A DNA stretch of 64,000 nt, from positions 147,365 through 211,364 of IMG/VR virus record IMGVR_UViG_3300035145_003993; one strand, given 5' to 3'. Every line of letters starts with the position of its first letter. Position 1 is the first letter of the stretch. A program made the translations under genes and the position numbers. The notes below the pieces were generated by a model. That model was given only the letters and a program-made list of their open reading frames with translations. It was not told the DNA's origin and did no database searches. Shown piece by piece: positions 15,912 through 37,562 of this stretch.

Positions 15912-16388
15912 ATGTCTTATTTGTTATTAGAAAATTATATTAAATCTATTATAGAAAAAAATACAATTAAAGAACTACATGTTTTTGATTTTGATATGAC
16001 TTTATACAATCATAATAAAAAAGATTGGTTTGAAGATGTCATGTTAAATTTAAAAAAATCTTTAAAAGATCCAAGTGTAAGAGTTATTTTATGCACAGCA
16101 AGAGAAAAAAGCGAAAATTTTATATTAAAAACTGAGAAGTTGCTTTCTACACGTAAAATGTCTCTTGAAGACTTTAATGAGTGTTATTTTAAATCAATAC
16201 ATAGAAAAGAAAAAACTCCGATTTATAAATCTAATGTCATTTTAGATGAAGTTAGTTCTAACACTAATATTGTAAAAGTAAAGTTTTGGGATGATCGTGA
16301 AGATACTCTTAATCAAGTTAAAAAAGATTTAAAAAAATATAACGAAAATATAATTTATATTCCTGTTAATCCTTTAAAAATTGCATAA
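15912..16388 (+). CDS. HAD-superfamily phosphatase (PNKP / Swiss-Army-Knife-like HAD)
   Basis: VFDFDMTLY motif I, LCTAR motif II, FWDDR motif IV; GAGG RBS; one of very few plus-strand genes. Confidence 0.75.
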   Translation: MSYLLLENYIKSIIEKNTIKELHVFDFDMTLYNHNKKDWFEDVMLNLKKSLKDPSVRVILCTAREKSENFILKTEKLLSTRKMSLEDFNECYFKSIHRKEKTPIYKSNVILDEVSSNTNIVKVKFWDDREDTLNQVKKDLKKYNENIIYIPVNPLKIA

Positions 16389-17228
16389 ATCTTTTTTCCA
16401 AGATAATATTTTTCTTTCAAGTTTTAAACTTTTATCTTTTTCATTTGCGTCTTTCAAAGTTATTCTATTCCAAGGGTATAATTTTCCTGTATTAGAAGAA
16501 GTAGATATTGTTTCTATTCCTTTAATAGAATATAAATAAATTTTACTGTCATCAATTTCAACGTTTCTTTTAAATTTTAAAACTTTTGGTGGTCTTCCCA
16601 TTTCAGACATTTCACTATCTTGTATTAATAATTCTTTACTAGTCCAAGGAATTGCAAATTTAATTGCGTCTTCTTTATAAGGAGTTACATAAGAGTATTT
16701 ATTTAAGCAATTAAATCTACTTTGACTTCCATGATAATATACTCTTTTCGAAATTTCAGGTATATAATATTGAGGTTTTACTTTAAAAGGAATAAAAATA
16801 TGGATTTCTTTTTTATCATCGGGACAAGAAAACCATAGTTTGTAAGCATCTGCAAATCCTTGTATTCCTTTACAGAATATTTTTTCTTTTCTCGCAACGA
16901 ATAAAAATAAACATTTTTCAATTTCATTAGGTAAAAGTTTAAAGTAATATGAATATTCTCTTCTCTGTAATATTTGATCAGGGCTAGATTCGTTTGTTGC
17001 ATTAAAAAAAGAAGCTCTTAGAAAAGATGTATTTTTTTCATGATAAGGAAAATATTTTCTAATCTCTTTTTCAGCTAATTTAAGTCTATGTCCTTCTATG
17101 ACTTTATCGTATCTTAAAGGTCTTAAAACTTTTTTATATTTTTTGTCTTTTGAAATAAACCAAATATCTGATGTTAGAAACTTTGTACCTAAGTTTTTAA
17201 TTTCAATAGGGACATTAATTTTTTTCAT
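16374..17228 (-). CDS. hypothetical protein with possible ADP-ribosyltransferase-fold C-terminal domain
   Basis: YYHGSQSRF...YVTPYKEDAIKFA resembles the H-G-[ST] / Y-x-[TS]...A-x-x-[FY] ART core. Confidence 0.4.
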   Translation of the reverse strand: MKKINVPIEIKNLGTKFLTSDIWFISKDKKYKKVLRPLRYDKVIEGHRLKLAEKEIRKYFPYHEKNTSFLRASFFNATNESSPDQILQRREYSYYFKLLPNEIEKCLFLFVARKEKIFCKGIQGFADAYKLWFSCPDDKKEIHIFIPFKVKPQYYIPEISKRVYYHGSQSRFNCLNKYSYVTPYKEDAIKFAIPWTSKELLIQDSEMSEMGRPPKVLKFKRNVEIDDSKIYLYSIKGIETISTSSNTGKLYPWNRITLKDANEKDKSLKLERKILSWKKDLCNF

Positions 17229-17273
17229 TATTTCTCTTTTTATTATGTTTTAATTTTATTTTAAATTATTATA

Positions 17274-18134
17274 TTAAGACAATATTGCTTTGACATAATC
17301 TTTAATTAATTTGTGAGCATTTATAACTGTTTTACCTTGTACTCTTGACATCGTTAAAGAGTTAATAATCATGTTTCTATTAGCCAAACTAAGTTGATCA
17401 GGTGAAAGTATAAACTGCCTAAAACATTCTGCAAAAAACTCTCTTTCATCTGTAGATCCATATTCTGAAGGCATGTGTTTCATAATTGACTCAATCATGT
17501 TTTCTATTTTAGATAATGGTGTAAACTTATCAGATAACTCATAATCTTTACAAATTTGAGAAGAAATACTAGAAAAGCCACCTTCAGAATTATTATCAAG
17601 AAAGTCAGCAAAATCATAAAATGATTCTTCAGCATCGTTTAAAAGTTTTTCGTTTCTTTCATCATCATTATTGTTTTCTATTATATCTTTTATAGACTTA
17701 AGCTCTCTAATAATATTTGTATAAGTTTCTCCTATTAATGTTATATACTCACTTGAATCTGATGAAACAAAATTAACGTGTATACAATGACCTATTTCAT
17801 GTACTAAAGTGTTTATAAGTTGTTCTTCATTTTTAAATTTACTTAAATCAAAAACAATAGCTTTAATATCAGTTTCTAAAAAAGCTTTCCAGTTATGTAA
17901 AGCTGATTTAAAATTTTTATCAATTTCAGCTCTTTCTTTATTACCCTTAACAATGACAAGACTTTTAAACAATTCTGATAATGGTGTGTTTATTCTGAAC
18001 TGTTTAAATTTAATATTAACGTTTTCTAACCCACTAATCAAATTATTTGTCATATAAAAATCATCTTCTGCATTTTTTGAAAAATAAACTTTTATACCAT
18101 AATAGTTTTCTATTCTCGTAAATTCAATATTCAT
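17274..18134 (-). CDS. zinc metallopeptidase (HEXXH, anthrax lethal factor/MtfA-like)
   Basis: TLVHEIGHCIH plus downstream YGSTDEREFFAECFRQF..P..L third-ligand motif. Confidence 0.75.
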   Translation of the reverse strand: MNIEFTRIENYYGIKVYFSKNAEDDFYMTNNLISGLENVNIKFKQFRINTPLSELFKSLVIVKGNKERAEIDKNFKSALHNWKAFLETDIKAIVFDLSKFKNEEQLINTLVHEIGHCIHVNFVSSDSSEYITLIGETYTNIIRELKSIKDIIENNNDDERNEKLLNDAEESFYDFADFLDNNSEGGFSSISSQICKDYELSDKFTPLSKIENMIESIMKHMPSEYGSTDEREFFAECFRQFILSPDQLSLANRNMIINSLTMSRVQGKTVINAHKLIKDYVKAILS

Positions 18135-18739
18135 ATATCACCTAACTTGATTAAATGTCTAATTAAATTATTATCTTTCTCTTTAAAAGTCGTATAATGT
18201 TTTGCACAACGTGGCTCGTACATTCCTTTTGAACCAACTCTCTCTTCAGCAGATGCATTATTTATATCAAACATAGCTTCAGTAAAATAAGCATCTTGAT
18301 CACAATCAGTACAGACTGCTGGGCATATTTCTATTTTTGTTGCCCAAGGCATTATATTTTTTATATTCTCAAAAGGTACCTCGTTTGCGTCTAATTGAAT
18401 TGATGACACAATTATATTAATACCTTTACGATATAAAGAAATTAAAACAGAATCAATATCATGTATCATAAATGCTTCATCTACAGCAATCACTGTATTC
18501 GAATTATACATGTCTTCATTGACATAGCACAATATTTCTTCAGCATGATTAATACAAAATGCAGGATATGTTGCTCCTGTATGTGTGCTTATAGCTTCTT
18601 TCGTATAACGATTATCTCTTTTAGCTTTAAATGCTATTACTTTACGACCTTTATATAAAGATCGGTCTATATCTGACATTAGTTTTGTCGTTTTAGATCC
18701 GAACATAGGCCCTGTATATATTTTAAATGTTGGATTCAT
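18131..18739 (-). CDS. tdk: thymidine kinase (type II)
   Basis: GPMFGSKTT P-loop, VDEA Walker B, AVCTDC and YEPRCAKHY zinc/lasso motifs. Confidence 0.93.
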   Translation of the reverse strand: MNPTFKIYTGPMFGSKTTKLMSDIDRSLYKGRKVIAFKAKRDNRYTKEAISTHTGATYPAFCINHAEEILCYVNEDMYNSNTVIAVDEAFMIHDIDSVLISLYRKGINIIVSSIQLDANEVPFENIKNIMPWATKIEICPAVCTDCDQDAYFTEAMFDINNASAEERVGSKGMYEPRCAKHYTTFKEKDNNLIRHLIKLGDI

Positions 18740-18828
18740 CTTCTATTTCTACTATCTTTATCATTTTCAATAACTTCTAATATCTCATTTTTACTAAATT
18801 TTTCTGGATTTAAAATTTCTTTAGACAC
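18736..18828 (-). CDS. small ORF, 30 aa (missed by track)
   Basis: AAGGA RBS then GTG; MSKEILNPEKFSKNEILEVIENDKDSRNRR; stop overlaps tdk ATG (ATGA). Confidence 0.45.
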   Translation of the reverse strand: MSKEILNPEKFSKNEILEVIENDKDSRNRR

Positions 18829-18837
18829 TTTTTCCTT

Positions 18838-19728
18838 TCAAGGTACGATATAAGCTGACCTAATATTAATTGTAAGTTCGATATCTACATCTTCTGGTAA
18901 AGAAATCTCACCAGCCGCTCTTACACTAAGTATCTTAAGAAATTCATAATCTGTCCATAAATCTTTTAAAACATTAGACTGTTTAAGAGTTACATCAACA
19001 TTTAAAGATTGATTTCTCCAAAGAAGATGAACGAATGAAATATTTTTATTTCCAGAATATGAAAAATTCCTATTATCTAATTTATTTTTTTTGCGTGAAT
19101 TACTTAAACCTGATCTTTCTAGAAATATTCTATTAGATAATTTATCTATAATTTGATTATAATATTTATTTTTTTCGGGATTATTTAATATTGTGTAATC
19201 AATATTATTGATGTCGATTTTTTCTTTACATTTTATGTCTAATAGTTCATTTTTTCCGCTCTTTATCACTAAAGATTTTATTAATTCTTGCGTAGGAATT
19301 TCGTTTAAAGAATTAATAAAAGAAATAGATTTTTGGCAATTTTCTTCAAGATTTTCACTTTCTATAAGTAAAACATTTGGATAATATTTTAAATTTGATT
19401 TAAGCAAATCTTCATAATATTTTCTTACTATTAGTATGCTATTTTCATCTTGACATTCATCACCTCTGATTTTTAATCTTTCTAAGATTGTTTTTTCACT
19501 AGGTAATAAAACAATATAAAGTATGTCAAGTCTATTTAGTTCTTTTAAAAGTTTATCATACCAAATCGATTCTATTCCTCTATCATAGAGTTTTGAATAA
19601 ACAATCATTGACATACAACTTCTATCTTGAATATTATAGATATAACCTGTTTCTTTATGAATTTTATTAAATAATGTAGTTTTACCACTACAGTCAGGTC
19701 CTTCAATAATAATATGTTGAAATCTCAT
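18838..19728 (-). CDS. dNMP (thymidylate) kinase fused to a degenerate ThyA/dCMP-hydroxymethylase-like C-terminal domain
   Basis: IIIEGPDCSGKTT P-loop and DRS motif; C-terminal ISFVHLLWRNQSLNVDVTLKQSNVLKDLWTDYEF resembles the TS-family Q-F/Y-x-x-R...RSxD...D/N segment. Confidence 0.7.
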   Translation of the reverse strand: MRFQHIIIEGPDCSGKTTLFNKIHKETGYIYNIQDRSCMSMIVYSKLYDRGIESIWYDKLLKELNRLDILYIVLLPSEKTILERLKIRGDECQDENSILIVRKYYEDLLKSNLKYYPNVLLIESENLEENCQKSISFINSLNEIPTQELIKSLVIKSGKNELLDIKCKEKIDINNIDYTILNNPEKNKYYNQIIDKLSNRIFLERSGLSNSRKKNKLDNRNFSYSGNKNISFVHLLWRNQSLNVDVTLKQSNVLKDLWTDYEFLKILSVRAAGEISLPEDVDIELTINIRSAYIVP

Positions 19729-19748
19729 TTAAAACCTTTTTATATTTT

Positions 19749-19777
19749 ATTGTATTAACTAATATGTATATTTACAT
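19749..19777 (-). promoter_or_regulatory. Promoter variant ATGTAA-N17-TACAAT upstream of the kinase gene
   Basis: One mismatch in each box, 17-nt spacer, intergenic. Confidence 0.55.
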
Positions 19778-19791
19778 ACAAAGGAAAAACA

Positions 19792-20001
19792 ATGTACCAA
19801 ATTTTAGAAAATTATATACAACTTGTATTTGAAAACGAAAAAAATAAAAACAAAACGTTTAAAGATATACTTAATAGTTTAAAAAATAGTCAAAATCCTA
19901 AAAAGGTACTAAGAAATACAGATCCTATAGAAAGAAATACAGATCAAATAGGATTTGACCAATTAATTAAAAAATCTAGTAATTCTAATCAAACGCGTTA
20001 A
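19792..20001 (+). pseudogene. short plus-strand ORF (69 aa), probable gene remnant with leader motif
   Basis: AAGGA RBS, MYQILENYIQLVFE leader, internal 14-bp direct repeat aagaaatacagatc (19911 and 19932), 3' end overlaps the dnaE-C stop. Confidence 0.4.
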
Positions 20002-23000
20002 TCTTTTTAAGCTTAGCTAAACTTGATGACATACCCCAGTTAACATCATTACTAATATCAGCCAACCAAGTTGTAAATTCAATTTCACCTTCCATATCTC
20101 CCCATACTCGAAGCCATCCACTTCGATTATCAATATCGACGCATTTCCATCTCATAAATGATTTACCGTTTTTAGTTGTTTTTCTAATAACTTCTGTAAC
20201 AGTAAACCATCCAATTCCACGCTCACCTTTTGGTATATCAAAAATACTATTGATTTGCTTCTGTTTTAGTTTTTTAACTAAGCTTGGTGGAAACAATAAA
20301 TCGTCATTTGCATCATTACTGAGTTCAAAATAGTTTTTAATTTTAGTACTTCTTGACCAATCACTAACAACTCTGTATTGTGAGATTAACTTTTCGACAA
20401 TTGGAATGATTTCTTCACCATTTTTATTTGCTTTTTTAATAGCAGTTTTTGTCATTCCAAAGCTTCCTTTCTTTAAAATCATATAATTATCCAAGATTAA
20501 ATCATGCATTTGTTTGTGATTGTCTAGTGTTCCATCTTGAAATTCTTGGAGTGACTTAAATGCTTCCATCTTTGTTAGTGATGAAAAAGCTGTTTTATTC
20601 ATTTTTGAATGTTTCCATTCTCCTTCTTTATTGTAAAAAAGATCTTGTAAATTATTATATGGTCTATTTACAAATATTTCTTCAACAGCTTTGTCACCTA
20701 CTCCTTTAAGAGATGTCAACGGAGGAACAAACGATTTTAAATCTTCTGAATATTCCCATTGAGATCCTGAGTGATTTATATCAATTGCTGATATGTCATA
20801 TCCTAGTGCCTTAATTTCTGCAATTACTTTGGACATTCCTTTAGGATTACCATTTTCTGATTGTAAAACAGTTGCTAGCCAGTCTGTTTCGTAGTGTGTA
20901 TGAAGCCACGCAGCGTAATATGAGTCGATTGCATAAGAAACAGCATGACTTTTATTGAAACCGTAAACAGCAAAACCTTCTATTTCTTCCCAAAGTTTTT
21001 TAGATATATGTTCGGGTACATCATTAATTTCTTTTGCACCTTTAATAAACTTTTCTCTTGCAATTGTTTTTTCATCTTTTTTATTTCCCATTGTTGCGAG
21101 ATTATTCTTAACAAGGGTTTTTCTCAGCTTATCAGCTTCACCTGGATCAAAACCTGATAGTTTTTGTGCAAGTAACATAAATTGCTCTTGAAATACAACG
21201 TAAGAAAATGTTGGTCCTAAAACTTCTTCGATAATCGGATGATCGTATTTAATTTGTTCTGCGTTTTGTTTAGATTTAACATATTTTTTATGAACATTAG
21301 CTTTAAGAGGTCCAGGACGATAAATAGCAGTTAAAGCTGCTAATTCTTCAATACTTTCTGGTTTAGCTTCTAATGAAAAGTTTCTAGCTCCTGTATTTGT
21401 AAATTGGAATATTCCTACAAATCTTCCATCATGATATACATGCTTCCAGACATCTTGATCATTTTGTTCGTGAAATCTACAATTTAAATGTTTATCAAAG
21501 AATTTTTTAGCATCACTAAATTGTGGATTATTATTACCCTCCTTTTTAAGGATTCTATAAATACAATTTTCAATATCTTTTAATAAGGATAAACCTAAGA
21601 AATCAAATTTAATAAAACCATTATCTTCTAAGTTTCTAAAATTTAATCCTTCTGACCATGGTGTTTGTAATTCTCCTCTTACACCTACGATAGGCATAGT
21701 TGTTTCTAAATGTTCAGGATCAGCTACTAACACACCCCCTGCATGACGACCAATTGCTCTATTCTGCATAAACAAAGAAGCAATATGAGTTTCAACTTCA
21801 GGATATCTTTCCATAAAATCTTTATATTCTGGAGAATACTTTTTACAATCTTCATGCTTAAGAACAAAAACAGATTTTTCTTGATCGTCACCTTTTGCCA
21901 TTTTCATAACTTGATCGTGAAGAGGACCAGTTACTTTATTTACTTCATCATACGGAATATCATAAAACTTAGATATATCTTTAATAAGAGACTTAAGCTT
22001 TAAAGTATTAAAGTTAGAAACAGGAATAACAGCATCGTTTCCATATAATTCTTTTGCAGCATTAATTAACTCATCACGATCACCAGCATCTGTATCAATA
22101 TCAGGCCATGAAACCCTATGCCTTCCTAAGAATCTTGCCCAAAGAAGATCGTATGGAAGAGGGTCAACTTGTGTAATGCCTAATAAATAATTAACTAAAG
22201 AGCCAGCTCCTGATCCTCTTCCTGGCCCTAATAAAGTTTTCTTTTCAGCCTTCTTAAAAATTTCATACATCGTAATAAAATATGCTTCGTGACCAAGATA
22301 CTTTATATCTGATAATTCTTCTTTAGCACGATCAACATAAACTTGGTTTGTATGAAAACCATGGCTAACGAGTGAATCTTTAACTAAAGAAGATAAGTGT
22401 TGAAAAGGAGTTTTATTTGGAACGTTTATTGTAGGTAGTTTAACTCCTGTATCAATCCAAGTATCTTCAAATTCATTCCAAACGATATCATGAGTTCGAT
22501 TAATAGCATCACGAACTAATTCTTCATTACCTTTATAAAATTCATAAGTAGGATATGAATCAAGAAATTCTTCCCACATTTGAGAAGCATTTTTTGGATA
22601 TAATTCACACTTAAGATCTTCAAATTCTGGAAGAGAAAGATTATCTCTTTTTCCTAACCAACCAAGTTTTTTATATAATTCTCGAGCTTGCCATTTTTCA
22701 TTTGAAGGGTAATGTGAATCTGCTGTACAAATAAGAGGAATACCTGTTAATTTATGGTGTTCTATAAGATAATCATTAACAGTATGCTGTTTTTCTAATT
22801 TATTAAACTGTAATTCAAGTTTAAAATTGTTTTCTCCAACACAAGAAACAAACCTATCTGTTAGATTTAATAATTCTTTCTGAATTTGTTCACGTGATTG
22901 ATTATGAACTTCACCTCTTAAAATACGATTACTATAAATACCACCAAGGCAGTTGTGCACTAAAATATTGTTAGCAAAAAAATTGTGATTACCTTCAACA

Positions 23001-23080
23001 GTAATGTCGTAAACGTCAGAAGTCTCATCTATTTCTTCAATAATTTCAACTTCAATAAATTTTGTTTGAATGTCTTTCAA
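19985..23080 (-). CDS. dnaE: DNA polymerase III alpha, C-terminal part (IntC 43 aa + 988 aa C-extein)
   Basis: TTG start with AGGA RBS; LVHN|CLGG junction; ADSHY, GRGSGAGSL, PDIDTD, GRHAGG, KFDFLGL, FNKSHA motifs; C-terminal OB-like region. Confidence 0.96.
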   Translation of the reverse strand: MKDIQTKFIEVEIIEEIDETSDVYDITVEGNHNFFANNILVHNCLGGIYSNRILRGEVHNQSREQIQKELLNLTDRFVSCVGENNFKLELQFNKLEKQHTVNDYLIEHHKLTGIPLICTADSHYPSNEKWQARELYKKLGWLGKRDNLSLPEFEDLKCELYPKNASQMWEEFLDSYPTYEFYKGNEELVRDAINRTHDIVWNEFEDTWIDTGVKLPTINVPNKTPFQHLSSLVKDSLVSHGFHTNQVYVDRAKEELSDIKYLGHEAYFITMYEIFKKAEKKTLLGPGRGSGAGSLVNYLLGITQVDPLPYDLLWARFLGRHRVSWPDIDTDAGDRDELINAAKELYGNDAVIPVSNFNTLKLKSLIKDISKFYDIPYDEVNKVTGPLHDQVMKMAKGDDQEKSVFVLKHEDCKKYSPEYKDFMERYPEVETHIASLFMQNRAIGRHAGGVLVADPEHLETTMPIVGVRGELQTPWSEGLNFRNLEDNGFIKFDFLGLSLLKDIENCIYRILKKEGNNNPQFSDAKKFFDKHLNCRFHEQNDQDVWKHVYHDGRFVGIFQFTNTGARNFSLEAKPESIEELAALTAIYRPGPLKANVHKKYVKSKQNAEQIKYDHPIIEEVLGPTFSYVVFQEQFMLLAQKLSGFDPGEADKLRKTLVKNNLATMGNKKDEKTIAREKFIKGAKEINDVPEHISKKLWEEIEGFAVYGFNKSHAVSYAIDSYYAAWLHTHYETDWLATVLQSENGNPKGMSKVIAEIKALGYDISAIDINHSGSQWEYSEDLKSFVPPLTSLKGVGDKAVEEIFVNRPYNNLQDLFYNKEGEWKHSKMNKTAFSSLTKMEAFKSLQEFQDGTLDNHKQMHDLILDNYMILKKGSFGMTKTAIKKANKNGEEIIPIVEKLISQYRVVSDWSRSTKIKNYFELSNDANDDLLFPPSLVKKLKQKQINSIFDIPKGERGIGWFTVTEVIRKTTKNGKSFMRWKCVDIDNRSGWLRVWGDMEGEIEFTTWLADISNDVNWGMSSSLAKLKKINAFD
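22952..23080 (-). mobile_element. Split intein C-fragment (DnaE), 43 aa
   Basis: Blocks F/G: VYDITVEGNHNFFANNILVHN, followed by Cys+1 at 22949-22951. Confidence 0.95.
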
Positions 23081-23099
23081 AATTATTCCTTTTTATTAG

Positions 23100-23128
23100 A
23101 ATATAATACAATTAGTTAATATTTACAC
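23100..23128 (-). promoter_or_regulatory. Promoter GTGTAA-N17-TATATT upstream of dnaE-C
   Basis: -35 box lies in the last codons of the endonuclease gene; -10 box is 19 nt before the TTG start. Confidence 0.6.
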
Positions 23129-24062
23129 TTTCATTAATTAAATCAATTGTATTATCAATTTCATTTTCCCATATAATCAAGTAGTTATAGTTTCTTTTTT
23201 TTGCTATCTTCATTTTGTAAGAATCAGCATTCCAAATATCACCTGCTTTTATTTTTCCTCTTGGGAAATCAAGAATGCTATTTTCATTATATAGAGAAGG
23301 GTGTGCGTGCCAAAATAGACCATGGCATTCAATGATTAAATTAAACTTTGGCAGATAAAAATCATATATGTAACATCTTTTGTTGTATAATAATTCATCT
23401 TTTGTCAAATTAATTCGATATTGAATAGAATAGTCAATGTTATTTTCTCTTAATAATCTTTCAATTCTTTTTTCTGTTTTAGGTTGTGATGTTTTTTTAA
23501 GAGCACCAATTGCACCTTTAACAGCTCTTTCTGAAATTATTGCATTTGCATTATCCTTACTTAATCCTTTCTTAAGCCAAAACTCAATGCAAAATGGAGA
23601 ATTTGATCGTTTATAGTTAGATAAACTTTCTTTTGCATCTTCAATATTTTCCGTTTTTTCTATCCAATACTCTAAAGTTTGTTTTTGGTTGTAAGGTTTA
23701 CCTGACTTTTTTCTAGTTTTAACTGTTCCTTTTTGTCCTTTTAAAGAAGTCTTCAAATAGTAACTTTCAATTTCTTTTATTGAAGTGTTTTTTGGAAATT
23801 TAAACTGACTTCTGAATGCTGTTGAAGTTTTTTGATTATCTACATGAAGCTTAAAACCGATTTTGTCTTTTAAAAGAATAGAAAAAGTTTGCTGTGATAT
23901 ATTTAACTCATTAAAGCATTTTCTATTGTCACGATTAATCATTTGATATAACATTGAAAACGAGTAAAGTTTATTAATAAAACCTTGTATTTCTTCTTTT
24001 GAGTAATAAGAAAAAAGTATTTCTTCTCTAATTTTCCATATATTTGTTTTTTTTGTTTTCAT
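23112..24062 (-). CDS. free-standing homing endonuclease, Vsr-like/DUF559 (EDxHD-type), inside the fractured dnaE
   Basis: SQPKTE...YIYDFYL...IIECHGLFWH...ADSYK...LIIWENE; position between IntN and IntC; AGGAGG RBS. Confidence 0.85.
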   Translation of the reverse strand: MKTKKTNIWKIREEILFSYYSKEEIQGFINKLYSFSMLYQMINRDNRKCFNELNISQQTFSILLKDKIGFKLHVDNQKTSTAFRSQFKFPKNTSIKEIESYYLKTSLKGQKGTVKTRKKSGKPYNQKQTLEYWIEKTENIEDAKESLSNYKRSNSPFCIEFWLKKGLSKDNANAIISERAVKGAIGALKKTSQPKTEKRIERLLRENNIDYSIQYRINLTKDELLYNKRCYIYDFYLPKFNLIIECHGLFWHAHPSLYNENSILDFPRGKIKAGDIWNADSYKMKIAKKRNYNYLIIWENEIDNTIDLINESVNIN

Positions 24063-24099
24063 TATATTATCCTCCTAGGCACATATTATATATTCTGCT

Positions 24100-25017
24100 T
24101 CAGAGGTTAATATTAATAATTATATCACCTTTAACAATATCTTTTGTATCAATCCATCCTTTGTCTTTAACAAGAACACGATGATCAGGTGTAAGTTTGA
24201 TTTCGTTACCTTCTTTGTCTTTAATTCTCATAAGCTTAGCACCTCCTCGGGTTTTGTCACCCCAGATTACTTTTTTAAATTCAGCTTTGCTAGTATATTC
24301 ATTATAAGAAAGAACTTGGATTTCTTCACCTTTATTAAATCTTTCTACAACTTCTTTAATAGATAGATTTCCAGATGAAGTTTGTAAAGTTGTGTCAGGA
24401 TGAAGACAAGCTGTAGATATGTGTAATCCTTCACCATGTTCTTGAAGCATTTGAAAATCAATACGTGGGTATCTATAAAAACCATATTTATACGATTTTT
24501 TAACTAAAGTAAATAAATTGTGAAGACCTTTTTGGTTTTTTGCTGTAACTACCAAATGATATCTTCTTTTCCACTCATCTTTAAGGATATCAACATTTTT
24601 TGTTTCATCTTCGTCTTCAACAACTAATCCGCCACTTTCATCATCTGCGTCAATATCAACTTTTTCTTTTGATTTCCTTTCAGCAGCAGCGGCAGATTTT
24701 GCGTCTTTTACTGCTTGTTTGTGAGCAGCATATTCTTCAGACCATTGTTGAAGTGAAGGAACAAAATAAAATTCAACTCCATAAATTTGTCTATAATTCC
24801 TTCCTGATTTTTGCATTCTAATTGTATGAGATCTTGCATGAGCAAGACCATTACCGTTACCATGGTCTGTTAGTGCCCATGCATCCATACCCTGAGATTC
24901 AGACAAAACAAAATCAATATGATCAGATGGGTATCCTAATCCATCGAATGTTGAAAACGTGCTGTGTGCATGAAGACCGACAAATCTATCTGGTGGTGTT
25001 ATTAAATCAATAGACAA
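24100..25017 (-). CDS. dnaE: DNA polymerase III alpha, N-terminal PHP part (203 aa N-extein + IntN 102 aa)
   Basis: LHAHSTFSTFDG, ALTDHGN, YGVEFY, HLVVTAKNQKG, YRYPRID PHP motifs; ISTA|CLHPDT junction; TTG start. Confidence 0.96.
   Translation of the reverse strand: MSIDLITPPDRFVGLHAHSTFSTFDGLGYPSDHIDFVLSESQGMDAWALTDHGNGNGLAHARSHTIRMQKSGRNYRQIYGVEFYFVPSLQQWSEEYAAHKQAVKDAKSAAAAERKSKEKVDIDADDESGGLVVEDEDETKNVDILKDEWKRRYHLVVTAKNQKGLHNLFTLVKKSYKYGFYRYPRIDFQMLQEHGEGLHISTACLHPDTTLQTSSGNLSIKEVVERFNKGEEIQVLSYNEYTSKAEFKKVIWGDKTRGGAKLMRIKDKEGNEIKLTPDHRVLVKDKGWIDTKDIVKGDIIININL
24103..24408 (-). mobile_element. Split intein N-fragment (DnaE), 102 aa
   Basis: Cys1 block A CLHPDT, block B TPDH, then a stop codon. 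Confidence 0.95.
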
Positions 25018-25394: not shown

Positions 25395-25493
25395 ATGAAA
25401 ACTAAAGAAATATTAAGAGAATGGAATTTATTTTTAAAAAATATATTGAGACTCTTATTTCTTAAATATTGTATTATACTAATCGTTCAATAA
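25395..25493 (+). pseudogene. 32-codon plus-strand stub with leader-like start
   Basis: AAGG RBS, MKTKEILREWNLFLKN...; resembles the start of ORF 36142-36564 (MKNIYEMFNQWRQFLLDE). Confidence 0.3.
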
Positions 25494-28174: not shown

Positions 28175-28194
28175 GATTTATCTCTCCATATATT

Positions 28195-30047: not shown

Positions 30048-30051
30048 ATTG

Positions 30052-30264: not shown

Positions 30265-30574
30265 TAAATACCTCTAATATATCTTCATCTCTAAAATATA
30301 CTTTTTCATTATTTTCTCCTAATGCAACGTAATAGCCTAAAGGAAAATTCTTTGTTTGAAAATGTATAGGAATTGCTGTTATTTTTTCATTAGATTCTTT
30401 ATCAATAAATGATATTAAATAAGACTTTTCGAAAAAAAATCTTCTTTCAACCATTGTGTTATAAAGATCTTCGTATTTTGCTTTTTTATAGTGTTTTGTA
30501 TCTTTAAAAGACCAAAATTTAAGTGTATCTTTATTCAATCGCGTCTTCATAAGGTTCTTCAATAAATTCACCAT
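30254..30574 (-). CDS. hypothetical protein, about 100 aa
   Basis: ORF in operon; the true start is probably internal (MKTRL). Confidence 0.55.
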   Translation of the reverse strand: MVNLLKNLMKTRLNKDTLKFWSFKDTKHYKKAKYEDLYNTMVERRFFFEKSYLISFIDKESNEKITAIPIHFQTKNFPLGYYVALGENNEKVYFRDEDILEVFSES

Positions 30575-30980: not shown

Positions 30981-31061
30981 TAAAATATTCCTTTTATAAT
31001 AATTTTTTCTAAGTTTGTAATTGTTTTTCAATAAAGTTTACTATTTTTAATAACTTTAAAA

Positions 31062-32027
31062 TTAATTGTTGAATTGTTTTTTAACTTGATTTATGGCTCT
31101 TACATCATCATTCCACATCCTTGTAAAGATTTTTTCTTCACCAGATTTATTGCCGTTTAATTCTTCGCGGCGACAAGGGTAAATTGAATCTTCTTCATTG
31201 AATTCAAACAAATCGTTTTTAGGCTCTGGATGATATAAATTAGTTCCTTTTGAAGTAAAAGTACCATCTGCTTGTTTAACTCTAAATGTTCTAACATAAT
31301 GCATGTCAGGTTTTTCAAAATCTAAGCAAGTTGCAACTTCAGGAATTCTTTCAACAACTAGTCTTGCTATTTTAGTAGCAATAATATTATCAACCTCAGG
31401 CTGAATTTGTACATCTTGTCTTTGTTTAATAAGACCAATTAAATCTTTTAAATTAAACCTTGCAATATAAAATGTTTCGATAGATTTTGGCATAATAACT
31501 CTAGCGTCCATTAAAGAAATTAGTTTTGAATCTACCATATCAGAATATAATTGTTTTGCAGCAGCAGCAACTTCAATAAATCTATGGTAAAAATCAGAAT
31601 TTTCAATAGACTCTGGAACTAAAATATTATCGTGTCGTAGGTCTCTATCACCTGTGCATTGAGCAGCAAATGATCCTGCTCTGTGTCTAATTAAGTGTGT
31701 TACGGTTTGAGTATCAATACCACTTATCCTAAAAGTAAATCCTAAACATTCCATAGGCGTTGGTAAGGCTCTAAAATTTAGTACGTCTTGAAGGTTTTGT
31801 GAGGCCTCTTCAGGTGAAGCATTATTAAAGTCAGTTTCAAAAGGTCGATCAGCCCATGTTGCCTTGGTCATATTCCAAGCTATTTCTTGTGCTTGCTTTT
31901 GTGTTGGAGCATCAATCACTTCAATTTTAAGTGATTCTAAATTGTTAATATAGTTTGTAACAGGAACTTCGTTAAACTTTAAAAGCATAGGAAGTTGAAT
32001 CTTATCTAAATCATTATTAATTGGCAA
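31062..32027 (-). CDS. divergent ThyX (flavin-dependent thymidylate synthase)-like paralog
   Basis: PME..FTFRISG...HLIRHRAGSFAAQCTGDR, DARVIMP, N..L....KQR; motif altered versus RHRxxSxxxxSxRY; TTG start with AAGGAG RBS. Confidence 0.8.
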   Translation of the reverse strand: MPINNDLDKIQLPMLLKFNEVPVTNYINNLESLKIEVIDAPTQKQAQEIAWNMTKATWADRPFETDFNNASPEEASQNLQDVLNFRALPTPMECLGFTFRISGIDTQTVTHLIRHRAGSFAAQCTGDRDLRHDNILVPESIENSDFYHRFIEVAAAAKQLYSDMVDSKLISLMDARVIMPKSIETFYIARFNLKDLIGLIKQRQDVQIQPEVDNIIATKIARLVVERIPEVATCLDFEKPDMHYVRTFRVKQADGTFTSKGTNLYHPEPKNDLFEFNEEDSIYPCRREELNGNKSGEEKIFTRMWNDDVRAINQVKKQFNN

Positions 32028-32054
32028 ATTTTTTCTCCTTGTTATTTACCATTC

Positions 32055-32083
32055 ATTATAAAATTAAAAATTTTATTTTACAC
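32055..32083 (-). promoter_or_regulatory. Promoter GTGTAA-N17-TATAAT upstream of the ThyX paralog and NDT
   Basis: Perfect match immediately upstream of the gene. Confidence 0.75.
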
Positions 32084-32752
32084 TAAATTATTCTTTTTAC
32101 TAATCATATCTTCTAATTGTTCTAGTAAAACAATATTTTCTTTAAAAATTAAATTTTCTTTTTTTATTTTTGCAACTGCTTCATCAAATGTTAATTTATT
32201 TAAATCTTGATATGTTTTTAACACTTCATAATCACTATCTAATTCTGCTTTAATTGAATCAGACCTTTGTATGTCTATGTAAAAAATATTTCTATTAATT
32301 GCATATTGTATTTCTTTAACTAAATTTAAAAATATATCTTTTTTAAATGAAAAAATATTTTCTATATTAAGATTAGTAATAGAAGAATATTCAATTATTC
32401 CTTCATCATTTTTTTTGTCTGACTGAAAATAGAGTTTGCAATATTTATTTTTAATAAAAAAGAAAGAATAAGAATTTACTATTTGTAAATCGATTTCAAT
32501 TGTAAATTCATCGCAAAAATCTAAAGAGTGATTAAAGTTTGTTTGATATTTTTTACTAAATAACTGTGTATAGTTGCTTGTAAACGTTAAGTACATTATT
32601 CCTGGATCAATAACTAAAGTCATATTTCCAGTTTGAATGAGACCTAAAGAATAAATAATATCGTATTCGATTGTGTCCCAAACTTTACTTAAAAATTCAT
32701 AAGATCTAAATTTCTTGTTAGTATAAAAATCTAGATCTTCATGAAAAAACAT
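32078..32752 (-). CDS. hypothetical protein, 224 aa
   Basis: ORF within the nucleotide cluster. Confidence 0.65.
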   Translation of the reverse strand: MFFHEDLDFYTNKKFRSYEFLSKVWDTIEYDIIYSLGLIQTGNMTLVIDPGIMYLTFTSNYTQLFSKKYQTNFNHSLDFCDEFTIEIDLQIVNSYSFFFIKNKYCKLYFQSDKKNDEGIIEYSSITNLNIENIFSFKKDIFLNLVKEIQYAINRNIFYIDIQRSDSIKAELDSDYEVLKTYQDLNKLTFDEAVAKIKKENLIFKENIVLLEQLEDMISKKNNLV

Positions 32753-32753
32753 T

Positions 32754-33140
32754 TTAATAACCTTTTTGTAGCCTTTTTCTAATTATTTCGTCTTTAATAT
32801 TAAATGCATTATAAAATTCATTAACATCAACGCCGATTAAAATCATTAATGAGAAAAAATAATTAAAAGCATCTACTATTTCTTCTAAAAATTCATCTCT
32901 ATCAATTTCAGGCATATCTGTTTCTCGATGAGGCTTCCAATTTTTTAAATGTTGAAGTGCCTCAAACATTTCTTCAACTCCTTTTAAAGCTGTTTCACGT
33001 AATAAATTTTGATTTTCTTTTTTTGAAATATCTACAGGCCATTCGTTTGTATAAGAATCAGGAAACTTATCTTGAATAAGTTTCATAAACGATTGTCTTT
33101 TATTAAAGATTTCAACAAGTTTATCATTTTCTAATGTCAT
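32754..33140 (-). CDS. all-alpha NTP pyrophosphatase (MazG/dimeric dUTPase/T4 gp56 dCTPase-like)
   Basis: EEMFEAL..LKNWKPHR and EEIVDAFNYF (ExxE / ExxD metal motifs). Confidence 0.82.
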   Translation of the reverse strand: MTLENDKLVEIFNKRQSFMKLIQDKFPDSYTNEWPVDISKKENQNLLRETALKGVEEMFEALQHLKNWKPHRETDMPEIDRDEFLEEIVDAFNYFFSLMILIGVDVNEFYNAFNIKDEIIRKRLQKGY

Positions 33141-33142
33141 AT

Positions 33143-33373
33143 TTATTGTACTTTTTCTTCTTGAGTTTCGCTTAACTTTTCTTGTGAATTAGATAACATT
33201 TTATTAATTTGTTCGTTAAAAATTTCTTGATATTGTTCGTTAACTGTAAGTTTGTTTTCTTCATTAATTTCTAATGATACCATCCTGAGATGGTCAACAA
33301 TGTCTGTTCCAGTTAAGATTGCCATTTGAATTAGTTTAGCAATATGTGCTATTGTAGTATCATGTAATAACAA
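33143..33373 (-). CDS. hypothetical protein, 76 aa
   Basis: ORF with AAGGAG RBS. Confidence 0.7.
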   Translation of the reverse strand: MLLHDTTIAHIAKLIQMAILTGTDIVDHLRMVSLEINEENKLTVNEQYQEIFNEQINKMLSNSQEKLSETQEEKVQ

Positions 33374-33383
33374 AATTTTCTCC

Positions 33384-33746
33384 TTAAATTACTACTGGTG
33401 ATTTGCTTAATTTTTGTGTTATAATATCTGAATCGTGATCTAATGCTTTAAGCATAGAAATACCTTCTATCGTTTTAATTGATTTTAAAACTGTTATGAA
33501 TTTATCTTTTCCTTCAACAAATTTTTCAATATATGAAACGTTTAATTCAATTATTCTATGACCATTTGAAGATACAATATCTGAAACTGGTCTTGTTTGT
33601 CTGACTGTTACGATTCCTGGTAAGGCCCTCATGTCAGTCATAATATCAAGAACTGTAGGGTCTTCTCTATCTTCTATTTTAATTCTACATCTAATTAAAG
33701 TATTAATTAAGTCTTCATGTCTTTCAACGAGTAATTTTTTCTTCAT
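33384..33746 (-). CDS. hypothetical protein, 120 aa
   Basis: ORF with AAGGAG RBS, LLVE leader. Confidence 0.7.
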   Translation of the reverse strand: MKKKLLVERHEDLINTLIRCRIKIEDREDPTVLDIMTDMRALPGIVTVRQTRPVSDIVSSNGHRIIELNVSYIEKFVEGKDKFITVLKSIKTIEGISMLKALDHDSDIITQKLSKSPVVI

Positions 33747-33781
33747 TAATAATCTCCTTTATAATGTAGTAATTATTTCTT

Positions 33782-34504
33782 TTACTCGTGATTATTAATA
33801 TAACTGTTAACAGTTTCTGGCCAAAGATCTTTAATAATATCTAACATTCTAAATGCTAATTGTTGAATTTCCCATTGAGCTCCTTCATGTGTTCTTAAAT
33901 TTATAAACTTTAATATGTTATTTAAATTCGCAGAAGCGTAATATTCTGTATAAAGATTTTGTGGTAAAATTCCACGCGCTTGTTCTCTGCATATACCATT
34001 GTTTACTAAATCATCAAATAATTTTAAAGAATTTTTGTGATAATTTTTAATAACATTCGATGCTTTAGTTTTAATTTTAACGCTACTTACTGCAGAGTCA
34101 ATTTCTAATATAGGATCAATTAATTCATCTTGATTTGAAGATTGTCTATTTGATTTGTGTTGAGTTCTAAATTGATTAGGTTCATAAAATTCTATATTAG
34201 AATCTGTATATCTTCTAGAGATTTCGTTGTATGACCAAGTTCTGTGTCTATGATGTTGTGATCGAACAAATAATGGAACTTTAATTCTAAAAGTTGCAAA
34301 ATTATGTTCTAAAGTAGATGTATGTTTATGTTTAATTAAATAATTAATTAACTTTTTATCTTTATTATCAAGACTTTCTTTGTGAACTCCGAATGATACC
34401 CTTGCTGAATTTACTATTGTAATATCTTCGCCAACATATTGAACTAATTCTATTTTTCCTATGCCATCTTCATACAGATTTTTTTCAATAGTATCTATTT
34501 TCAA
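33782..34504 (-). CDS. thyX: flavin-dependent thymidylate synthase ThyX (canonical)
   Basis: NSARVSF, HTSTLEH, RHRTWSYNEISRRY, EQARGILP, FINLR...AQWEI. Confidence 0.96.
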   Translation of the reverse strand: MKIDTIEKNLYEDGIGKIELVQYVGEDITIVNSARVSFGVHKESLDNKDKKLINYLIKHKHTSTLEHNFATFRIKVPLFVRSQHHRHRTWSYNEISRRYTDSNIEFYEPNQFRTQHKSNRQSSNQDELIDPILEIDSAVSSVKIKTKASNVIKNYHKNSLKLFDDLVNNGICREQARGILPQNLYTEYYASANLNNILKFINLRTHEGAQWEIQQLAFRMLDIIKDLWPETVNSYINNHE

Positions 34505-34509
34505 ATTTA

Positions 34510-35274
34510 TTATCCTTCACTTTTTTGATTATTTAATGGCTTTTCAAAGTGATAAAAAGCTCCTCCTGTGTGACCGTCGTGAATTAGAGTTGCAAAACAC
34601 CTTGCAACAGGACCACCTAATTTATCCTTAAGTTTTTTATAAAAAGGATGATTTTTAATTTCTTTTGGAATTCTCCACGAAGAAGATGTAGAATATCCTG
34701 TATCATATTTAATAAAGTCAAACCCTGTATCTGTACCTAGCTTAATAAAATTTTCATGAACTGGAAAGTTAACATGTCCAATTTTATGTTCCTTTTCAGG
34801 TGAATGAAATTGTGTGTCTTGTGTATTCATTGGGAATCCTAGTACCATTCTCCCACCAGGTCGAAGAACTCTATAAAGCTCTTTCATAATATATGGATAA
34901 TTGTGGTCTTCAATATGTTCAAAAACTTCTGACGAAACCATGATATCAAACATTTCGTCACTATATGGGAGTCCTGTTGTGATATCATGTTGCTTTAATT
35001 GAAATTTGTTACTTTGCTTAGACCAAGCCATATCGATATATTTTTGTTGATAGTCAATACCATAATACTCAGTAAAAACAAAAAGACTTTTCATAAATGT
35101 CCAGAGTCTACCATTATAACATCCAATATCAAGAAGTTTTGGCTGATTTTTTCCATCATATCCATTTGAAGAGCACCACTTACGAACAGCTTCAACTAAA
35201 TAATTTTGAGAAAAAACAATAAATTGACAATCAATTAAAGTTTGTGGGTGAGACTTTTTTTGTATCGCAGCCAT
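34510..35274 (-). CDS. class I SAM-dependent methyltransferase
   Basis: LLDIGCYNG motif I, YGID, DITTGLPY...FD, SEVFEHI, RVLRPGG. Confidence 0.9.
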   Translation of the reverse strand: MAAIQKKSHPQTLIDCQFIVFSQNYLVEAVRKWCSSNGYDGKNQPKLLDIGCYNGRLWTFMKSLFVFTEYYGIDYQQKYIDMAWSKQSNKFQLKQHDITTGLPYSDEMFDIMVSSEVFEHIEDHNYPYIMKELYRVLRPGGRMVLGFPMNTQDTQFHSPEKEHKIGHVNFPVHENFIKLGTDTGFDFIKYDTGYSTSSSWRIPKEIKNHPFYKKLKDKLGGPVARCFATLIHDGHTGGAFYHFEKPLNNQKSEG

Positions 35275-35324
35275 ATGGTTACATACCTTTCTTATTTTTT
35301 ATAATTTTATTAATTTGTTTTATT

Positions 35325-35353
35325 ATTATATTAATATTAGTTTTATTTTACAC
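35325..35353 (-). promoter_or_regulatory. Promoter GTGTAA-N17-TATAAT heading the MTase-thyX operon
   Basis: Perfect match, intergenic. Confidence 0.75.
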
Positions 35354-35359
35354 TAAAAA

Positions 35360-36142
35360 TTAATCAATATTGTAATATAATTTTTCTGCCCAAGGTATAA
35401 CATCCCATTTTTTTGCTGAAATGTTGTGGTGTCCTACAATACTATATTTAGAAGCTTCTTTCACAGACATTACATCTAAACTTTCACAAACTGGTTTGTC
35501 TGTGAGATTAGTTGCTTCTCTTAATGATTGTAAAAATTGTTTGCAAACATCTGCAAAATCGTCACCAATCATTACTAATTTTCTTCCTTTTACTCTATTA
35601 TCTGGTATTTTACAAACTTGAAGTGATGCATCTGGGTACCAATTTTTAGTTTTTTCCCAATATTTTTCATCTGGATGCATGCAAATATCAATACCAATAG
35701 AGTATTTATTAAATTTTCCTGCATGATAAGCAGCTAAACCTGTATCTAAGCATTGTAAAATTTCATATTCACCTGTTTTATGATTTCTTCCAATTAAAAA
35801 ATGTGAAGAAACGTGTCTTCCTCTTGCAAGATTAAAAACATTATAACAGTGTCTAGAATTTAATCCTCCCCAATGTACACAAATAGATGTAGGATCAGAT
35901 TTTCTTTTATACCAATTTTTTGTACCATCATCAAGTTCGTATAAAGGCGCAGACCAATCAATTTCTAAAGGAGAATCAATTGGAACGACTTTTCCCATAT
36001 GCATTATGATAGGCATCCCATAATATTGTCTAACTGCTCTATGAGTTGCTGGTCCATATATACCATCTGCTTTAACACCTACTTCTTGTTGAAGTGATAT
36101 TACATATTCTTTGTTTTTATTTAAAGTACTAAACTGTTCCAT
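35360..36142 (-). CDS. endolysin: peptidoglycan-binding domain plus N-acetylmuramoyl-L-alanine amidase (Amidase_2)
   Basis: LQ..VGVKADGIYGPAT; ICVHW, SSHFLI, AYHAG..N..SIGID, VGHH...K.D. Confidence 0.85.
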   Translation of the reverse strand: MEQFSTLNKNKEYVISLQQEVGVKADGIYGPATHRAVRQYYGMPIIMHMGKVVPIDSPLEIDWSAPLYELDDGTKNWYKRKSDPTSICVHWGGLNSRHCYNVFNLARGRHVSSHFLIGRNHKTGEYEILQCLDTGLAAYHAGKFNKYSIGIDICMHPDEKYWEKTKNWYPDASLQVCKIPDNRVKGRKLVMIGDDFADVCKQFLQSLREATNLTDKPVCESLDVMSVKEASKYSIVGHHNISAKKWDVIPWAEKLYYNID

Positions 36143-36564
36143 TATCTATTATTACCTTCAATTCTATCTTTAATTCTATCTTTAATTATTTCTTCCTTGT
36201 TAGGATAAGATTTTATAACTATTTTAAGACATTTTTCTGTTAATTTTATTAAAGATTTTACATCATCATCAGTTATAGGTTCATTTTTATTTTTTTTAAA
36301 ACTTTTTTTAAGTTTAAAAAGACTTTCATCATCTGTAGACATTTCTAAATATTCTAAATAAGAATTAATATTTAACAATAATGAATTAATCATTCTGTCT
36401 GCAGATTCTGGTGTTTTTAAACTTAGTTTAACAAATCCTATAGCTTCATCATAGTCTAAATCCATCTGCTTTTCACTAATTTCTGTAATGATTTCTTTAT
36501 TTGGCAAATTTTCATCTAGTAGAAATTGTCTCCATTGATTAAACATTTCGTATATATTTTTCAT
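36142..36564 (-). CDS. hypothetical protein, 140 aa
   Basis: ORF with AAGGA RBS; WRQFLLDE leader. Confidence 0.7.
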   Translation of the reverse strand: MKNIYEMFNQWRQFLLDENLPNKEIITEISEKQMDLDYDEAIGFVKLSLKTPESADRMINSLLLNINSYLEYLEMSTDDESLFKLKKSFKKNKNEPITDDDVKSLIKLTEKCLKIVIKSYPNKEEIIKDRIKDRIEGNNR

Positions 36565-36575
36565 AAATAATCCTT

Positions 36576-37562
36576 TTAATAATCTAAATTTTCTTCGTAA
36601 TCATCATATTCATCAGAATCACCAAATTCAGTAAATGCAGTTGCTGTATTTAAAACATATTTTCCTAAGACATTTTGTAAGTCTTCTGTTCCAACTTCAT
36701 TTTTTGCTCTATTTATCATATCCTCATTGATATTACTACCGTCGAGAGCGCCACAAATTTTCAAAGATCCAAGAGCTGTCATTAGATTTATTATTTCGTC
36801 ACTTGCATTTTGAGTTCTTAGAAAATTAATTTTTTCTTGAACGCTATCTTTAATTCTTTTCTTTTCAGAAGGTTTTACATTATAGACACCTCCTTGAGAA
36901 AATAAATCGTTTTCATCTTCAGACTGCTCTAAATTTAGTGGCTGTCTAAAGAAACTAATAACATCATCATTTTTTCCTGAAATGACATTTTGACTCCACT
37001 CTTCTAGGCTATCAAATTTATTAATACCTAAATCACCTTCAATATCATCTTTATTTAAGCTCAATTCTTCATAGACATCATCTGATAAGTTTAAAGAATT
37101 TGACAGTAATTCTTGAAATAAAAGAACTAAAGGATTTTCTTGATTTTCTTGATTTATAGGATTAGAATCGATTCCAAAAACAGATTTAATAGCAGATAAT
37201 TCTTTGTCTGTAAGTTGTTTAAAATCATTATTATTAATCCTTCTAGTAAAAGAATCTTTAACGCTATTAGGAATACTATTAGGATTGCCAATCTCTTTTG
37301 CTGTGTTTACTATAGCTGTTTCTTCGTTAGGTTTTAATTTAGTATTTTTCCCTATTTGAGTTCCTAAAATACCTGTTGTTCCTATTGCTAATATTAATAT
37401 TTTTTCTAATGGTGTTGTATTAGAAACGAATTTTTTTATATTTTTTAAAAAATTTTCGTCTATTCTATTATTTTTATTTAAAATACTTTCAAATATATAG
37501 TCTATTTCATCGTAGTAAAATATTTGATTTTTAATATAACTTTCTAATAATTGATTTGTCAT
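36576..37562 (-). CDS. hypothetical protein, 328 aa, with a short hydrophobic segment
   Basis: ORF; LLESYIK leader; ILILAIGTTGILG segment. Confidence 0.7.
   Translation of the reverse strand: MTNQLLESYIKNQIFYYDEIDYIFESILNKNNRIDENFLKNIKKFVSNTTPLEKILILAIGTTGILGTQIGKNTKLKPNEETAIVNTAKEIGNPNSIPNSVKDSFTRRINNNDFKQLTDKELSAIKSVFGIDSNPINQENQENPLVLLFQELLSNSLNLSDDVYEELSLNKDDIEGDLGINKFDSLEEWSQNVISGKNDDVISFFRQPLNLEQSEDENDLFSQGGVYNVKPSEKKRIKDSVQEKINFLRTQNASDEIINLMTALGSLKICGALDGSNINEDMINRAKNEVGTEDLQNVLGKYVLNTATAFTEFGDSDEYDDYEENLDY

Follow-up and report, generated by a model that had tools for sequence, protein, structure and literature searches.

Terminal leader peptides shared by unrelated proteins of an uncultured T4-related jumbo phage: a candidate expansion of the T4 capsid-targeting principle

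Several proteins with unrelated bodies share a short terminal peptide in the stretch of DNA analyzed here (the window), 64,000 nucleotides that cover positions 147,365 to 211,364 of the IMG/VR virus record IMGVR_UViG_3300035145_003993. The record is a single genome of 211,364 bp with 27% GC (guanine plus cytosine), designated G000, and the window is its last 64 kb; positions called "window" refer to the 64-kb stretch and those called "genome" to the whole record. We fetched three relatives for comparison, G001 (239,550 bp, complete, with a capsid protein 86% identical to that of G000), G004 (288,697 bp, 57%), and G002 (first 260 kb, 58%). A first reading of the window by a model that saw only the letters and the open reading frames (ORFs), here the original prediction, had proposed that the shared peptide is a portable capsid-targeting signal of the kind found on T4 internal proteins.

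The leader that we call Y-type occupies the first 15 codons of a plus-strand gene (window 15912 to 15956), where it ends in ...LLENYIKSIIE and scores 14.0 bits with the independent matrix described below. The gene itself (window 15912 to 16388, plus strand) encodes a protein of 158 residues with a HAD_SAK_1-type phosphatase body (Pfam PF10307, E = 2e-8) that is similar to Pnkp of RNA repair; Foldseek aligned it with the Pnkp1 RNA-repair complex 4xrp_A at a TM score of 0.54. The first 14 codons of a basic 69-residue ORF (window 19792 to 20001, plus strand), which has an AAGGA ribosome-binding site upstream, are likewise a Y-type leader (...ILENYIQLVFE), and a homologue of this ORF is absent from G001, G002, and G004. 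A third Y-type leader (...QLLESYIKNQ, window 37488 to 37562), which contains the strict motif, starts a 328-residue protein on the minus strand (window 36576 to 37562). These three peptides lie where the original prediction had placed them, and a blastp comparison confirmed that the bodies behind them are unrelated. A second type of leader, here W-type, was claimed for two loci. It is present (...FNQWRQFLLDE, window 36511 to 36564) and matches the W-type pattern in a 140-residue protein encoded on the minus strand (window 36142 to 36564), but the other locus did not stand: the 32-residue ORF quoted there (window 25395 to 25493, plus strand) overlaps the start of a 392-residue gene, lies between two minus-strand genes, has no E following the motif, and is probably not a gene.

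One protein bears the motif at the other end. A 286-residue protein with an HExxH zinc metallopeptidase body (window 17274 to 18134, minus strand), whose HEIGH motif is invariant and whose Pfam matches are all below threshold (M90, ATLF, DUF6782), ends in the Y-type sequence LIKDYVKAILS (window 17277 to 17309, minus strand), as the original prediction had noticed. This extreme C-terminal motif, including an invariant Y280, is kept in 19 of 19 homologues, the most distant being 42% identical. Because it is conserved at the C-terminus of the peptidase, the motif appears to work at either terminus, and since no cut site lies beside this copy, the motif would there dock without being cut off.

Across G000, the strict pattern [IL][IL]E[NS][YF]I was found near the N-terminus (start at residues 4 to 8) of 6 proteins in 4,110 positions versus once in 60,368 internal positions (odds ratio, 88; p = 4e-7), and the Trp-centered W-type pattern had 6 N-terminal matches in 5 proteins and no internal match (p = 7e-8). 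A 13-column matrix trained solely on leaders of G001, G004, and G002 and then scanned across G000 returned 9 matches of at least 12 bits versus 0.25 in shuffles, 8 of the 9 starting at residues 5 to 8. A profile scan of this kind had been set beforehand, by the original prediction, as its refutation test; the outcome was enrichment at N-termini. Loose regular expressions and all-against-all scoring of N-termini gave modest enrichment only, and anchored patterns and the matrix were needed. The bodies of the tagged proteins are mutually unrelated (blastp). The leaders use different synonymous codons, and conservation does not extend to the DNA 5' of the start codons; hence the motif is selected at the protein level. 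A chance likeness caused by AT-rich codon bias could be expected to produce such peptides in a genome of 27% GC, all residues of LLENYIK having AT-rich codons. However, the motif is almost missing at internal positions of the same proteins, the shuffles yield a small fraction of the matches observed, and the motif recurs in genomes of 36 to 40% GC. An origin by chance or composition is ruled out by these positional and shuffle controls, and we give it next to no probability.

The leaders fall into three recognizable classes, Y-type, W-type, and I-type. The two types of the original prediction were both correct, but the division was incomplete, as the I-type is a third and much larger class. 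Y-type leaders (its type 1) read MK.LR.YIR..LL(.)E in GC-richer genomes; in the AT-rich G000, the hydrophobic positions are retained, but drift of the polar face has given LLE[NS]YIK..I.E. I-type leaders have the Y-type spacing with Ile replacing Tyr (consensus MK[IL]TKRQL[KR]RII[RK]EE) and are found in G000 at window 12410 to 12784 and at genome 84884, 87490, and 7692. W-type leaders (its type 2) follow W..[FY][LI].E, and besides the 140-residue protein they start proteins at genome 2081, 83810, 85372, and 138497. The anchor pattern on N-termini marks 19 of 274 genes in G000, 21 of 296 in G001, 48 of 377 in G004, and 40 of 305 in G002, counts that include some chance matches. About twenty unrelated proteins of G000 start with a tag, about ten of them encoded outside the window. 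The bodies of 40 Y-type proteins fell into 27 unrelated families (blastp), and the leader is therefore a tag and not the mark of a paralogue family. We rejected an ordinary paralogous family with a common N-terminal domain, the bodies being unrelated and no domain model lying over the leader: no model of Pfam or PHROG covers any leader. Most tagged bodies are without a Pfam match, with exceptions that include HAD_SAK_1, DUF5824, and a zeta-toxin/AAA_33 kinase, and PHROG searches with ten tagged proteins gave nothing informative. A Sec, Tat, or lipoprotein signal peptide was also rejected, the leaders, inspected by eye, having charges every 2 to 4 positions and no hydrophobic core.

In related phages the tagged genes form arrays of 10 to 20 consecutive members. 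G004 has 14 Y-type genes in a run of adjacent genes at 31.9 to 45.3 kb and an I-type array at 52 to 60 kb, and G002 has a Y-type array at 248 to 260 kb. G000 and G001 have in common a variable slot that holds tagged genes.

The leaders are the most conserved part of the proteins in the HAD, 328-residue, and peptidase families. Among 16 homologues of the HAD protein (52 to 91% overall identity), the leader has three invariant residues (Y9, I10, and K11) and three with a conservation of at least 90% (L5, L6, and E7). The leader of the 328-residue protein is kept in 9 homologues, and in 3 an extra leader-bearing module is fused in front. Judged from these alignments, the leader motif is shown to be under purifying selection. 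In AlphaFold2 (AF2) models, the HAD leader is a helix of residues 3 to 14 with a predicted local distance difference test (pLDDT) score of 55 to 65, detached from a core at 85 to 97, and the C-terminal motif of the peptidase is a detached helix of residues 273 to 285 with a pLDDT below 50, the core being at 85 to 94. A conserved helix that is modeled as detached and poorly placed is the usual signature of a docking peptide.

G000 contains a T4-type head module at genome 2.4 to 14.1 kb, in which Pfam identified the Gp23 major capsid protein (E = 5e-80), a prohead protease of the gp21 family (Peptidase_S77, PF03420; E = 1.2e-28), a portal of the T4 type (Gp20; Portal_T4, E = 5e-77), and a large terminase, also of the T4 type. 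An alignment of the protease (genome 9084 to 9686) with T4 gp21 spans 152 residues at 39% identity, and the catalytic His (HP motif) and Ser (SSRG motif) are kept. The capsid protein has 592 relatives in IMG/VR, with up to 86% identity and many of them on contigs of 140 to 290 kb, and the nearest cultured phages (Flavobacterium phage immuto, Microcystis phage Mel-JY01, and Rhodothermus phage RM378) are only 33 to 44% identical; G000 is therefore a member of a large, uncultured clade of aquatic jumbo phages distantly related to T4. An L[RK]E that precedes a variable Gly/Ser linker of the capsid protein is invariant among the 74 relatives examined and lies where T4 gp23 is cut. The capsid protein and the protease of G000 both carry an L[IV]E.W motif at the N-terminus, and the W-type leaders resemble it. 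The leaders also reach into the head module: an I-type leader is present on a head-module gene at genome 7692, and 21 of 25 head loci include a core-module gene that starts in the I-type manner. The sole strong internal match of the matrix in G000 is in a paralogue of the protein encoded directly upstream of the capsid gene, the position of the gp22 scaffold in T4. This upstream protein of 505 residues has no significant similarity to T4 gp22 in a BLAST comparison and is a candidate scaffold by position and composition only. A complex prediction that paired the scaffold-position protein (27-row alignment) with the HAD protein (16 rows) returned a score of 0.00, which is evidence neither way.

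Most leaders end in [LIVF]-x-E, the cleavage motif of T4 gp21, and nearly all contain such a site. The tripeptide lies at +4 to +8 from the anchor in 39 of 128 N-terminal matches versus 25 of 263 internal ones (p = 4e-7), and the I-type pattern, I-[RK]-E at +3, accounts for a further 63 of the 128 N-terminal cases. In G000, the [LIVF]-x-E site ends at residue 17 to 19 in 12 of 19 leaders. When contigs were picked solely by a back-translated leader pattern, 12 of the 12 leader-bearing contigs that are at least 40% complete encoded the S77 protease, a proportion that has no baseline comparator; the only negative contig was a fragment estimated to be 13% complete. Tagged genes are absent from a block of 85 presumed early genes (P = 6e-4). 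In a test for late promoters, TATAAATA was upstream of 3 of 18 tagged genes versus 13 of 274 genes overall, a difference that is suggestive but weak at 27% GC.

Because the motif is position specific, sits on unrelated bodies, is under purifying selection, forms a detached helix in the models, and mostly ends in the protease consensus, and because it occurs together with a T4-type head and protease, we hypothesize that the leaders are an expanded, T4-like system of capsid-targeting propeptides. This hypothesis draws on sequence, synteny, co-occurrence, and modeled structure, and we give it somewhat better than even credence. The leader would be a short amphipathic helix that acts as a portable propeptide like the capsid-targeting sequence (CTS) of T4 internal proteins. 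It would dock the attached protein on the scaffolding core of the T4-type head during prohead assembly; cleavage by the gp21-family protease after the terminal [LIVF]-x-E of the leader would then release the cargo within the capsid, and the cargo might later be ejected with the DNA. Besides the RNA-repair-type HAD phosphatase and the zinc metallopeptidase, such cargo would comprise many ORFans and small basic proteins. Most likely, the tag loads its bearers into the capsid and, by analogy, we file it as working like the T4 targeting sequence, of which it is presumably a new version. The analogy with T4 that the original prediction had drawn is borne out by the T4-type head, the gp21-family protease, the [LIVF]-x-E ending, and the W-type spacing, but not in every protein, as the terminal E is variable in the HAD family and the peptidase has no site at its C-terminal copy.

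Both of these exceptions weigh against capsid targeting: E15 of the HAD leader becomes A, T, K, or D in some homologues, and no [LI]-x-E is adjacent to the copy on the peptidase. On the same side stand the genomic setting of the HAD gene among genes of nucleotide metabolism (dCMP deaminase, thymidine kinase, and DnaE), the share of tagged genes in G004 and G002 (up to 10 to 13%, many for capsid cargo), the missing comparator for the protease co-occurrence, the ClpP-like gene discussed below, and the lack of a close cultured relative of the clade.

Why would an enzyme that is encoded amid nucleotide metabolism carry a packaging tag? The helix might instead dock its bearers to a hub other than the capsid, such as a replication or nucleotide-metabolism complex, the phage chaperonin, or a host protein, in which case the bearers would be cytoplasmic and remain unpackaged. 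The location of the HAD gene fits such a hub, and G000 encodes a Cpn60 chaperonin that could serve as one. The motif also occurs at N- and C-termini alike, with no cut site beside it on the peptidase, and conserved, detached helices are expected of any short linear docking motif. We nevertheless consider a non-capsid hub improbable, as it leaves unexplained the conserved [LIVF]-x-E with which the leaders end, their likeness to the N-termini of the capsid protein and the protease, the presence of tagged genes within the head module, and the strict co-occurrence with S77. Less probable still, in our view, is a role of the tags as terminal degrons, or as sites recognized by the phage ClpP-like protease, which together with a host or phage unfoldase would limit the lifetime of the tagged proteins. 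Clp degrons can sit at either terminus, the ClpP-like gene is directly upstream of the tagged genes at its locus in both G000 and G001, and such a gene is present in 6 of 6 leader-rich relatives tested. However, the two do not go together consistently: Mel-JY01 has a ClpP-like gene yet no leader arrays, immuto has two I-type-like starts yet no ClpP, and the gene adjoining ClpP is untagged in G004. Moreover, the known Clp degrons are short and do not resemble a conserved amphipathic helix of 14 to 18 residues that has an invariant aromatic residue and ends in Glu, and the repetition of leaders within single ORFs fits cleavage sites better.

The conserved gene starts could also be mainly scars of recombination and duplication, left by cassettes that shuffle via shared 5' ends, so that the peptide itself would have no targeting role. 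Tagged genes do lie in tandem arrays, neighboring tagged modules are fused in frame, and the same codon is used among leaders at a frequency of 0.51 to 0.65, compared with 0.36 to 0.48 expected from codon usage. This excess indicates that shared descent or recombination through the leader DNA contributes, as proposed for the T-even loci. As the main cause, though, we rate recombination as low as the degrons, since 35 to 50% of synonymous sites differ and the upstream DNA is unconserved, leader residues are invariant in homologues that are only 42 to 68% identical overall, and the same motif is conserved at a C-terminus. The leaders also persist over genomes of 27% to 40% GC, with the hydrophobic positions kept while the polar ones change.

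The capsid-targeting hypothesis has its closest precedent in T4, whose sequences we took directly from NC_000866. T4 gp21 cleaves after L/I-x-E, and the ten N-terminal residues of IPIII suffice for packaging, with residues 4 and 7 important in targeting and residues 8 and 10 in processing; C-terminal propeptides are also present on Alt and on gp21 itself (PMC9026906). The internal proteins of T-even phages have only the targeting sequence in common and are encoded at hyperplastic loci (PMC3012670). The leaders described here resemble the CTS of IPI, IPII, IPIII, and the Alt propeptide in being short terminal peptides on unrelated proteins of a phage with a gp21-type protease and in having hydrophobic or aromatic targeting positions followed in most cases by L/I-x-E, and the slot shared by G000 and G001 is similar to the variable T4 loci with swapped bodies. 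The spacing of the W-type leaders, W..F[IL].E, equals the Y..FI.E of IPII and IPIII, in which positions 4 and 7 are aromatic, 8 is I, and 10 is E, whereas that of the Y- and I-type leaders is longer, L..[YI]I[KR]..hh(x)E. T4 gp23 and gp21 have an N-terminal L-[LIV]-x-x-W that also occurs in the capsid protein and protease of G000, and the W-type leaders look like copies of it; in the capsid protein, however, the motif is part of a delta region of about 59 residues and not a portable tag of 18 residues. T4 has one CTS of 10 residues and about 4 tagged genes, compared with three leader classes of 14 to 27 residues and about 20 to 48 tagged genes per genome in these phages. In addition, the tags here are on enzymes (HAD phosphatase, metallopeptidase, and zeta-toxin-like kinase), leaders are repeated in some ORFs, one copy is C-terminal without a cut site, and the system is known from sequence alone.

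Two other systems invite comparison. In the giant phages phiKZ, 201phi2-1, and SPN3US, a diverged gp21-type protease processes about 19 head proteins after Glu, and prohead targeting has been proposed as the role of the N-terminal propeptides (PMC9026906, PMC5694885). Cleavage in these phages occurs at S/A-x-E, and a leader sequence common to their propeptides has not been reported, whereas the leaders of the present clade are recognizable from their sequence and its head genes are much closer to those of T4. The likeness to encapsulins lies in the mode of working only, with no known sequence similarity. Encapsulin cargo-loading peptides are short, N- or C-terminal, and load unrelated enzymes into a shell of the HK97 fold; they bind the shell protein directly and stay uncleaved. 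The leaders described here, by contrast, belong to a virus that has a scaffold and a protease and that packages DNA.

The I-type class extends far beyond these genomes. A profile of 37 I-type leaders searched against 1.84 billion representative proteins matched 7,765 clusters at E <= 0.001, 187 of them at E <= 1e-10. Many of the top matches have 2 to 4 leader copies per ORF, and the inner copies are still Met-led (P0093-P0242). These ORFs look like polyproteins or in-frame fusions of neighboring tagged genes, and fusion of tagged modules in frame fits leaders that act as cleavage and targeting modules. An observation in its own right is that the inner copies in metagenomic ORFs are often preceded by E-[SGAN]-K. 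We consider it possible, though on the doubtful side, that the three leader classes are a cargo code readable from sequence, which would mark thousands of protein families (the 7,765 clusters are of the I-type alone) as capsid-packaged, injected effectors of abundant, uncultured aquatic jumbo phages related to T4. The cargo would then include enzymes and polyprotein-like chains of several cargos, and the leader classes might differ in the part or the stoichiometry of the prohead core that they address. If this is true, the packaged and injected protein arsenal of widespread aquatic jumbo phages, likely made up of host-takeover and counter-defense proteins, could be listed from sequence alone, while it is otherwise found only through virion proteomics of cultured phages. 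The T4 targeting-sequence principle would grow from about four proteins to tens per genome, and a role would be assigned to thousands of metagenomic ORFans that have the same start of about 14 residues, no family model, and no mention in the literature. The new leader classes could also serve as packaging tags for protein delivery.

Among known phages, we found no leader arrays in Syn9, S-PM2, Mel-JY01, or immuto. A tblastn search of GenBank phages with I-type proteins gave no usable matches; since a match of 15 residues cannot reach the E-value limit there, this result says little about absence. String searches of the literature for the leader sequences returned no relevant paper, and a search on capsid targeting in cyanophages returned only the T4 review. 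The cultured phage immuto has two I-type-like starts and is a possible experimental entry point. The two proteins start with MKKSQLR.II[RK].. (L139:2836-3315 and L139:13144-13902; record positions 102836 and 113144), and one of them has a DUF5661 match together with a weak RegB-like match. The exact I-type leader pattern was also seen on the IMG/VR contigs L197 and L220, which are binned as a giant-virus metagenome-assembled genome (GVMAG-S-1030632-100), possibly by mis-assignment.

The window contains further tagged genes that the original prediction had missed, all on the minus strand. An I-type leader (...DLRDIVKNILFE; 14.1 bits with the independent matrix) is present on a protein of 124 residues (window 12410 to 12784), and the orthologue in G001 retains it. 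Motif scans of G000 also identified a weak Y-type leader (...NLMQNYLNE) on a protein of 115 residues (window 8913 to 9260); the orthologue in G001, at 64% identity, starts similarly. A protein of 240 residues (window 14194 to 14916) has a weak I-type leader (...LDKIIKEAVDSSLSE; 8.6 bits) with a matching start in G001 at 40587.

Small, very basic proteins (pI 10 to 11) follow directly behind Y-type leaders in a run at genome 140736 to 141077 (L008:7736-8077) and at 16.1 to 17.3 kb of G001. They are reminiscent of DNA-associated internal proteins, and one of them matches DUF5824. The block without tagged genes consists of 85 small plus-strand genes at genome 88.9 to 123.6 kb (L005-L007); it is presumably an early region, holds several small paralogue families, and is enriched in the upstream motifs AGTGTAAT and CATAAGGT.

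The gene for the ClpP-like protease (window 37596 to 38201, minus strand; Pfam CLP_protease, E = 2.5e-23), directly upstream of the two tagged genes at window 36142 to 37562, follows the genes for ribonucleotide reductase (RNR) and thioredoxin and is conserved throughout the clade. Between it and an Amidase_2 gene (window 35360 to 36142) lies a slot with these two tagged genes in G000 and one different tagged gene in G001. The large subunit of RNR is encoded in pieces (window 39502 to 42527, minus strand): an N part with an N-intein (41361 to 42527), a free-standing GIY-YIG endonuclease (40544 to 41284), and a C-intein with the C part of RNR (39502 to 40563). The DnaE polymerase gene is fractured likewise (window 19985 to 25017, minus strand), with a PHP domain and the N-terminal half of an intein (24100 to 25017), an ORF of 316 residues without a Pfam match (23112 to 24062), and a piece that opens with the C-terminal intein block and continues with pol III alpha (19985 to 23080). 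The N-intein pieces of DnaE and RNR are paralogous. The Cpn60/GroEL-type chaperonin, a protein of 543 residues, is encoded near the start of the window (533 to 2164, minus strand).

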